From contig NW_027192201.1 of assembly GCF_041956535.1 (NCBI RefSeq), forward strand, positions 44,475-96,661: a stretch of DNA of 52,187 bases, written 5' to 3'. This DNA comes from Calcarisporiella thermophila CBS 279.70 (lineage: Eukaryota > Fungi > Calcarisporiellomycota). The notes under the pieces were generated by a model. That model ran no database searches, was not told the DNA's origin, and saw only the letters and a program-made list of their open reading frames with translations. The position numbers and the translations under genes were made by a program. Each line of letters starts with the position of its first letter. Within the stretch, counting starts at the first letter, position 1. Positions 51,556 through 52,187 of the stretch are shown piece after piece.

Positions 51556-51657
51556 TCTATTAGATTAGAAAATATAAGTGCGTAAATGAGAAATGAAAAA
51601 AAAAAATAAAATAAAATAAAATTATATATTCAAATGCCGCAAAAATGAATAAAAAAC

Positions 51658-51730
51658 TGGAGAACCCGGGTATCGATCCCGGTGCCTCTCGCATGCTAAG
51701 CGAGCGCTCTACCATTTGAGCTAGTCCCCC
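51658..51730 (-). tRNA. tRNA-Ala (AGC)
   Basis: Reverse complement GGGGGACTAGCTCAAATGGTAGAGCGCTCGCTTAGCATGCGAGAGGCACCGGGATCGATACCCGGGTTCTCCA; G3:U70 pair; T6 terminator follows. Confidence 0.97.
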
Positions 51731-51806
51731 AATTCCTGAGAATGTCGTGTGCTAGAGAAGGGATATGCTGTAAGCTAGGATAAATAGGCGAATAGTAGCG
51801 GTTTCA

Positions 51807-52074
51807 TAATCGAAATGGCGCGGGTTCGAACCCCGCAATCCCCACCAGCACTCGCTTCTTGAGATTGCTGTCCACTTGCCCTTTGGCTCTAACACGACAA
51901 ACACGACTTTCACGATAAACACAACAATAACGACTATTACTGACGCAATGAGCGATGCTCGTCAACATGACGTGGATAACTTACTTCGCGTCAAGCTCTT
52001 TCACGTCTGCTTCTTGTAATATTGGGAACTATTAACCTAATAAAAGTTTCCATTGATTGATCAAAAAAAAAAAA
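51807..52074 (+). mobile_element. 5'-truncated tRNA-headed retroposon (SINE-like) with poly(A) tail and target-site duplication
   Basis: T arm GCGGG-TTCGAAC-CCCGC, then AATCCCC-A-CCA; AATAAA 52039-52044; A12 52063-52074; flanked by (A)GCGGTTTCA at 51797-51806 and 52074-52083. Confidence 0.75.
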
Positions 52075-52088
52075 GCGGTTTCACGGAC

Positions 52089-52187
52089 GGGGGAGGGTTA
52101 GTGTAGTGGACTATCCCTGGTATGCCGACGAGAACGGCGTGGGTTCGAATCCCACTTCCCCCACCAGCACTTACTCTTAGTTTGTGG
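52089..52187 (+). mobile_element. Second related element: full tRNA-like Pol III head with encoded CCA, runs off the window
   Basis: Acceptor GGGGGAG/TTCCCCC, A box TAGTGTAGTGG, B box GGTTCGAATCC, ACCA, then the GCACT..TCTT trailer shared with the first element; no canonical D-arm/anticodon-arm geometry. Confidence 0.65.

Follow-up and report, generated by a model that had tools for sequence, protein, structure and literature searches.

The window, the whole stretch of 52,187 nucleotides of Calcarisporiella thermophila DNA that we analyzed, contains a tRNA-Ala(AGC) gene on the minus strand at positions 51657–51731 (identified with ARAGORN). This Pol III gene marks the landing site of the insertions described here, whose features all lie on the plus strand. 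The DNA that hosts both SINE insertions of the window is repeat X, a 280-bp LTR-like repeat whose initial 64 nt are present here (51743–51806). At the end of this segment we found the upstream copy of a target-site duplication (TSD), GCGGTTTCA (51798–51806); the A at 51797 is indistinguishable from poly(A).

The inserted unit begins with positions 37–292 of SINE family A (51807–52062). This segment opens with TAATCGAAATGG, lacks an A box and is built up, in order, from a partial anticodon-like arm, a T arm, the acceptor 3' strand, ACCA, a unique body and a 3' hairpin. The T arm contains a perfect B box (51823; GGTTCGAACCCC), and the acceptor 3' strand with the encoded ACCA occupies the region 51843–51848 (CCACCAGCACT at 51842). 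The 3' hairpin, identified by folding, is marked by AATAAA at 52039, followed by GTTTCCATTGATTGATC at 52046. A poly(A) tail (A12, 52063–52074) and the downstream TSD copy GCGGTTTCA (52075–52083) complete the insertion. The sequence GCGGTTTCACGGAC (52075–52088) doubles as the upstream flank of an older insertion, a family B SINE. The first 99 nt of this full-length copy are present (52089–52187), and the element continues past the window end.

The unit at 51807–52074 measures 268 bp and corresponds to positions 37–304 of the 305-bp family A SINE. A distance of 75 nt separates its first base (51807) from the tRNA-Ala 5' end, with unit and gene arranged head-to-head on opposite strands. An earlier analysis of the bare letters, referred to here as the sequence-only reading, had described a tRNA-like 3' half, a body, AATAAA, A12 and a direct repeat, and all of these were located again at the same positions. 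Full-length family A copies (e.g. L001:1465-1769) carry 36 further bases at the 5' end, comprising the acceptor arm, the D arm and the A box, so the window copy is 5'-truncated, as had been supposed. The junction shows a microhomology of 2 nt (CA), the end of the upstream TSD being identical to SINE positions 35–36. Since the unit occurs at five other places with 99.6–100% identity, other flanks and other TSDs, it is no chance resemblance. Its match to L001:1499-1768 is 100% identical. Single-copy status had been named as the outcome that would speak against a retroposon; the unit proved to be multi-copy, each copy with its own TSD. Judged from its sequence, 51807–52074 is a dead-on-arrival, 5'-truncated family A SINE copy of C. 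thermophila.

A 23-codon ORF is present inside the family A body (51948–52019). In the alignment with family B it is not conserved, and for this reason it is taken as probably a chance occurrence.

SINE families A and B

The copy census comprises 47 SINE copies in fetched loci (72 loci in all, chosen by SINE or LINE similarity). Genome-wide coordinates are those of the matches listed, which are not exhaustive. Family A (305 bp) is represented by 6 copies with a divergence of 0–0.3% and identities of 99.6–100%. The other 41 of the 47 copies belong to family B (~340 bp), for which L009:1220-1560 served as the reference. Family B copies are 92–99% identical to this reference and 1–6.5% diverged; the full-length ones (n = 28) differ by 1.2–6.5% from their majority sequence. 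Both families are spread over many contigs. Full-length copies with a fixed 5' end, a complete head and both A and B boxes number 4 for family A and 28 for family B.

Such full-length elements consist of a head with A and B boxes and ACCA, a body, a hairpin with AATAAA followed by TTGATTGATC, and poly(A). The A box reads TGGTGCAGTGG or TAGTGTAGTGG and the B box GGTTCGAAC/TCC. Family B has its own tRNA-like head, shares the ACCA-GCACT junction with family A, and continues with the core GCTGTCCACTTG and a different body; the last ~45 nt are again common to both families. The tail motif GTTTCCATTGATTGATCAAAAA occurs 164 times in the genome when up to 2 mismatches are allowed (73 exact occurrences), compared with 0 for the reversed control. 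The family B copy in the window (52089–52187) is 98% identical to positions 2–99 of L009:1220-1560, and its head contains an A box at 52099, a B box at 52142 and an encoded ACCA.

The heads of L001:1465-1769 (family A) and L009:1220-1560 (family B) fold as near-cloverleaves ending in ACCA. ARAGORN reports the family B head of the window (52089–52187) as an anomalous tRNA with a 2-base anticodon, and the Rfam tRNA-clade score of the SINE heads is below threshold. Such heads give rise to false tRNA calls, including false calls of a tRNA with a giant intron, and tRNA counts are inflated as a result. The sense strand is free of TTTT in both families, which fits read-through by Pol III. It is the one observation in support of a putative transcription of full-length A and B SINEs by Pol III. 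Among the public sequencing runs listed, none contains the stretch, each sharing just 0.04 of the words.

The 5' truncation points vary among copies (positions 37, 48, 63, 86, 144, 175, 185 and 227); the second 5'-truncated family A copy, in L006, starts at position 63. TSDs were found for 30 of the 47 copies and nearly all of them differ from one another. They are 12–18 bp long except for those of two 5'-truncated family A copies, which measure 7–9 bp (window) and 11–15 bp (C24). Poly(A), locus-specific TSDs and variable 5' truncation agree with the origin by target-primed reverse transcription (TPRT) that the sequence-only reading had assigned to the unit.

ACCA is encoded in the heads of A, B and a third family (L028, L051), which suggests that the heads derive from mature tRNAs, for example if the reverse transcriptase (RT) switched templates; an origin from strong-stop DNA appears less likely. 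This feature of the three heads is relevant to the long-standing question of where tRNA-derived SINEs come from. None of the 38 tRNAs compared as possible sources exceeds 66% identity to the heads. A metagenome scan for the head/ACCA/GCACT motif returned one contig, which is unrelated.

Further repeats were observed at these loci. The third family (L028:1150-1215; L051, reverse, ~913–1050) has a different tRNA 3' half with ACCA, followed by GTRCTAGAGATG, and possesses its own A-tail and TSDs. Another short poly(A) family ends in AATAAAGATCCATAAATCTC(A)n (L048:2560-2745; L028 ~960–1150) and is a further component of these tRNA-gene stacks. At L046:4007-4275 an insertion of ~270 bp with inverted ends (CCCTATAGG...CTTATAGGG) interrupts a family B 3' tail and is MITE-like.

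Position and orientation at tRNA genes

The SINEs and their L1-like LINE partners land almost only ~65–80 bases upstream of tRNA genes, facing away from them. For 26 SINE copies out of 47, the distance between their 5' end and that of a tRNA gene encoded on the opposite strand is 73–88 nt, and no tRNA-adjacent copy departs from this orientation (26/26). With distance and strand both fixed, the targeting of tRNA upstream regions that the sequence-only reading had postulated is borne out. The targeted genes represent many different isoacceptors. A binomial model that allowed 1,500 tRNA-like loci in 28.16 Mb and a 16-nt oriented window gave a chance of 4e-4 per insertion and P ~3e-75 for 26 of 47. 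Most of the remaining copies are found in same-orientation stacks behind younger insertions or have no readable flank.

The TSDs were used to place the two nicks. The first falls between -60 and -73 on the tRNA-sense strand, with a median of -66, and the second between -73 and -88, with a median of -80. Base preference at the nick (A before, T/G after) is at most weak and is partly produced by the poly(A) boundary itself.

All five assessable family A copies are at tRNA genes. In every stack the family A copy is the one nearest to the tRNA gene (window; C24; C44:71251/71572), as expected if new insertions keep their distance and displace older ones outward.

Two exceptions concern family B. 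One copy is inserted in another SINE (L028). The other (L018:1501-1835) is found on the strand opposite to a 38-nt fragment of a family A head (L018:1917-1954), 80 nt upstream of this fragment, and no tRNA gene was found near it. Its position beside an isolated head fragment hints that SINE heads may attract insertions and act as landing marks. At loci without a tRNA gene, no other Rfam families were found. Four 5S rRNA genes were located (C31:280129-280655, C53:18771-18889 and C5:1186735-1186848 in G000); among the matches listed, no LINE or SINE tail lies beside them.

Two tRNA loci are described here in their own right. L001 contains a divergent pair of intron-containing tRNA genes (870–960 and 1297–1388), probably tRNA-Tyr GTA. 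ARAGORN misses both with default settings and, in intron mode, calls them tRNA-Asp with an intron. A separate family A copy is situated 78–80 nt upstream of each gene. Within the window, the tRNA-Asp gene at 379–450 has an upstream stack (G000:C11:42522-44474) that includes a truncated family B copy on the opposite strand.

Repeat X allows the choice of site to be followed at single-nucleotide resolution. It is 280 bp long, begins with TGTCGTGTGC, has inverted ends and adjoins tRNA genes at -10 to -14; besides the window, it is present upstream of a tRNA-Ala gene (L004) and a tRNA-Pro gene (L007). The same 13–14-nt TSD, GCGGTTTCACGGAC, flanks a family A copy in L004 and a family B copy in L007. 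In the window, family B occupies this very site of X, and family A was inserted later via the same first nick. A and B elements are therefore found at the same nucleotide of X beside three different tRNA genes. An X copy without a SINE (L049:6800-7079) contains a single, uninterrupted GCGGTTTCACGGAC and represents a paralogous, not an allelic, empty site. The reuse of one nucleotide by different families at different tRNA genes indicates a very precise choice of site. X may represent a solo LTR whose parent, a Ty3-like element, would likewise target tRNA genes; in that case a second class of retroelement would be present at the same genes.

The distribution could in principle also arise from random insertion, either with selection purging the copies elsewhere or with duplication of tRNA-flanking blocks. 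A compact genome of 28 Mb and the occurrence of several other repeats in tRNA flanks, the LTR-like X among them, would suit such a scenario. However, a 16-nt window, a single orientation and the reuse of a nucleotide by different families go beyond what selection can produce, and family A copies with a divergence of only 0–0.3% are already at tRNA genes wherever they can be assessed (5/5). Block duplication is ruled out because TSDs and tRNA identities differ between the loci. We regard random insertion as highly improbable and interpret the distribution as targeted integration.

Proposed LINE partner and mechanism

Fragments of LINEs occupy the same stacks as the SINEs, in the same orientation. 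Of the tRNA genes with LINE-coding matches up to 3 kb upstream, 20 have them on the opposite strand and 4 on the same strand; a neighbouring divergent tRNA gene explains three of the latter, and the remaining one goes back to an artefactual tRNA call.

The LINE architecture was assembled from fragments of several copies. A fragment of ORF1 (L057:2928-3524, minus strand) contains a CCHC zinc knuckle and begins 67 nt from a tRNA-Gln gene; it has no match in Pfam. Fragments of ORF2 show an AP-type endonuclease (PF03372), an RT (PF00078) and a zf-RVT domain (PF13966), and Pfam detected no RNase H domain in the LINE fragments. Aligned with human L1 ORF2p, ORF2 yields an E-value of 1e-78 over 750 residues, compared with ~1e-24 for R2 proteins. 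By this alignment the partner LINE is L1-like. At least two LINE lineages are present with ~40% mutual identity, each with subfamilies that are 65–90% identical.

The best database match of ORF2 is an NCBI protein of C. thermophila itself (99–100% at G000:C12, in two exons), by which the genome was assigned to this species; an exact-protein search with a gene of the window gave no result. The nearest relatives outside this species are 30–35% identical, and two of their contigs (L073, L074) carry no tRNA gene. An ESM Atlas search returned only generic endonuclease-RT clusters. A 1002-aa ORF in C24 was considered as a partner and discarded, as it belongs to a gypsy-type LTR element.

The connection between LINEs and SINEs is provided by their 3' ends. 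One LINE subfamily ends in ...CGGAAACTAATAAAAGTCTCCGTTGATTGATC(A)n and is 83–86% identical to the last ~60 nt of family B; LINE 3' ends resembling B were found in L048, L004, L011 and L044. The SINE tail GTTTCCATTG and the closest LINE tail observed, GTCTCCGTTG, differ at two positions. All tails fold into a hairpin with AATAAA in or beside the loop. The stems are CGGAAAC/GTCTCCG in the B-like LINE subfamily, TGGAAAT/GTTTCCA in family B, GGGAAC/GTTTCC in family A and GAGTCTT/AAGACTC in another LINE subfamily (L021, L044). The stem sequences thus vary yet stay paired, which is the pattern expected of a 3' element recognised by an RT. The shared tail suggests that the SINEs may be mobilised in trans by an L1-like LINE subfamily with the same 3' end.

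The sequence-only reading had left the choice between a SINE and a deleted LINE. If the unit were an internally deleted LINE, it would have an mRNA-like layout with a small ORF and would have gained a piece of tRNA at its 5' end. The shared LINE 3' end and the 23-codon ORF at 51948–52019 are compatible with this idea. So are other 5'-truncated retroposon units that start with tRNA 3' fragments plus CCA, which imply that the RT can join tRNA to other templates. Yet among the LINE sequences compared, only the last ~60 nt of the unit are LINE-like, the small ORF is not kept in family B, and the lack of TTTT on the sense strand suits read-through by Pol III. Moreover, the head is complete, with both boxes, and its 5' end is constant in 4 A and 28 B copies. 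Full-length copies of 305 bp with a complete tRNA-like head settle the earlier choice on the side of the SINE; the deleted LINE, with LINE similarity confined to the last ~60 nt, was dropped. Although it is the least unlikely of the three alternatives weighed in this study, it is very improbable.

The last alternative starts from an LTR retrotransposon. Here the head would be a primer tRNA, its CCA included, that stayed joined to strong-stop cDNA, and a Ty3-like integrase would have inserted the element next to tRNA genes. ACCA encoded directly after the acceptor stem, the location of the LTR-like repeat X (-10 to -14) next to the tRNA genes concerned and the gypsy-type elements in the genome would be in keeping with this. 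On the other hand, poly(A), TSDs of variable length (12–18 bp) and frequent 5' truncation are signs of TPRT and not of an integrase, the 3' end is common to LINEs and not to an LTR, and the SINEs land elsewhere (-66/-80) than the LTR-like repeat. The strong-stop route may nevertheless account for the head. We consider an LTR origin of the element as a whole the least probable of all and retain that of a SINE mobilised by a LINE.

Starting from the observed anatomy, copy number, TSDs, distance, orientation and shared LINE tail, we propose the following course of events. Master SINEs would be transcribed by Pol III from their internal A and B boxes. The ORF2 protein of the LINE would then bind the 3' hairpin and A-tail of the SINE RNA in trans, and a LINE protein would dock on the TFIIIB/TFIIIC/Pol III complex of a tRNA gene, by analogy with TRE5-A. 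In the next step the endonuclease would nick the DNA at about -66, just outside the stretch presumably covered by TFIIIB, and reverse transcription would be primed on the A-tail. A second nick ~15 bp farther out (at about -80) would generate the TSD. Contact with the Pol III pre-initiation complex in the docking step is presumably how the ~66/80 bp are measured. The element would end up head-to-head with the tRNA gene, and new insertions would reuse the landing pad and shift older ones outward. Such reuse would explain why the young family A copy of the window is situated between the tRNA-Ala gene and the older family B copy.

Taken together, we consider it highly likely that the window contains a dead, 5'-truncated copy of SINE A, which would have arisen from a Pol III RNA by LINE-driven TPRT at a measured distance from the tRNA gene. 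A wider proposal is that an early-diverging fungus independently evolved a tRNA-targeting non-LTR system with several L1-like lineages, at least three SINE families, measuring of ~66/80 bp, template-switched heads and heads serving as landing marks. Toward this proposal as a whole we lean with considerable reserve.

Comparison with known systems

The host, C. thermophila, belongs to the phylum Calcarisporiellomycota, an early-diverging fungal lineage. In build, its SINEs correspond to stringent LINE-SINE pairs such as eel UnaSINE1/UnaL2, in which a tRNA-like head and a unique body are followed by a LINE-like 3' hairpin and a repeat or A-tail. These pairs also show TSDs and 5' truncation, and their SINEs are dispersed and not aimed at Pol III genes. 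The composite build is alike, whereas the encoded ACCA and the aim at tRNA genes are particular to the C. thermophila elements.

Among fungal SINEs, AfuSINE of Aspergillus fumigatus comprises short elements with tRNA-related heads, and TSDs of 4–14 bp are given for the tRNA-related families in the part of the description considered here (PMC5063351). The same part of that description reports no targeting of tRNA genes for AfuSINE, in contrast to the SINEs of C. thermophila (PMC5063351).

Fungal elements listed as targeting tRNA genes are of the LTR type only (PMC5006619, PMC5911963). Ty3 of S. cerevisiae and Tj1 of S. japonicus are LTR elements for which Pol III genes serve as safe havens (PMC5911963), and Ty3/gypsy elements of Rhizopus oryzae co-localise with tRNA genes (PMC2699053). 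A 2026 review gives Ty1/Ty2 as the sole example of integration upstream of tRNA genes. The Ty3, Tj1 and Rhizopus elements differ from those of C. thermophila in that they rely on an integrase and not on TPRT, insert directly at the Pol III start site or close to it, in a single orientation or in both, and produce short TSDs of fixed length. We found no published fungal LINE or SINE with tRNA-gene targeting in the literature on Calcarisporiella, Mucoromycota and site-specific SINEs.

Non-LTR elements that target tRNA genes are listed from dictyostelids only, namely TRE5, TRE3, NLTR-A and NLTR-B (PMC5006619, PMC5911963). NLTR-B of Polysphondylium pallidum and NLTR-A of D. purpureum are non-LTR elements unrelated to the TREs and integrate 39–64 bp and 2–6 bp upstream of tRNA genes, respectively (PMC5006619). 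They acquired this habit independently, which indicates that it evolves convergently. They differ from the C. thermophila elements in host group, distances and the presence of an RNase H domain, and no SINE partner has been described for them.

The closest analogue is TRE5 of Dictyostelium discoideum, and in its behaviour the C. thermophila system is TRE5-like. TRE5 elements insert ~44–54 bp upstream of tRNA genes in opposite orientation (PMC5911963, PMC5006619). The ORF1 protein of TRE5-A binds TFIIIB, and targeting requires the B box (PMC5911963). Both systems share the upstream position, the opposite orientation, an ORF2 with endonuclease, RT and zinc finger, an A-rich 3' end and the reuse of the landing zone. 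They differ in distance, as the nicks in C. thermophila are placed at about -66 and -80 and not at 44–54 bp, and on this account we do not count the system among the TRE members. Furthermore, the host is a fungus and not an amoebozoan, tRNA-headed SINEs are abundant and ORF1 carries a CCHC knuckle. TRE5-A uses 5S genes as well, whereas in C. thermophila none of the matches listed lies beside a 5S gene.

If our interpretation is correct, C. thermophila would provide the first LINE/SINE system of this kind beyond the dictyostelids, together with the first case of a tRNA-derived SINE homing to tRNA genes. The stacked insertions serve as a natural time series, and the elements would offer a second, independent system in which to see how an endonuclease-RT machine reads the Pol III complex. 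Compared with TRE5, the same orientation rule combined with another distance in a fungus would constitute a clean case of convergence on a safe haven.
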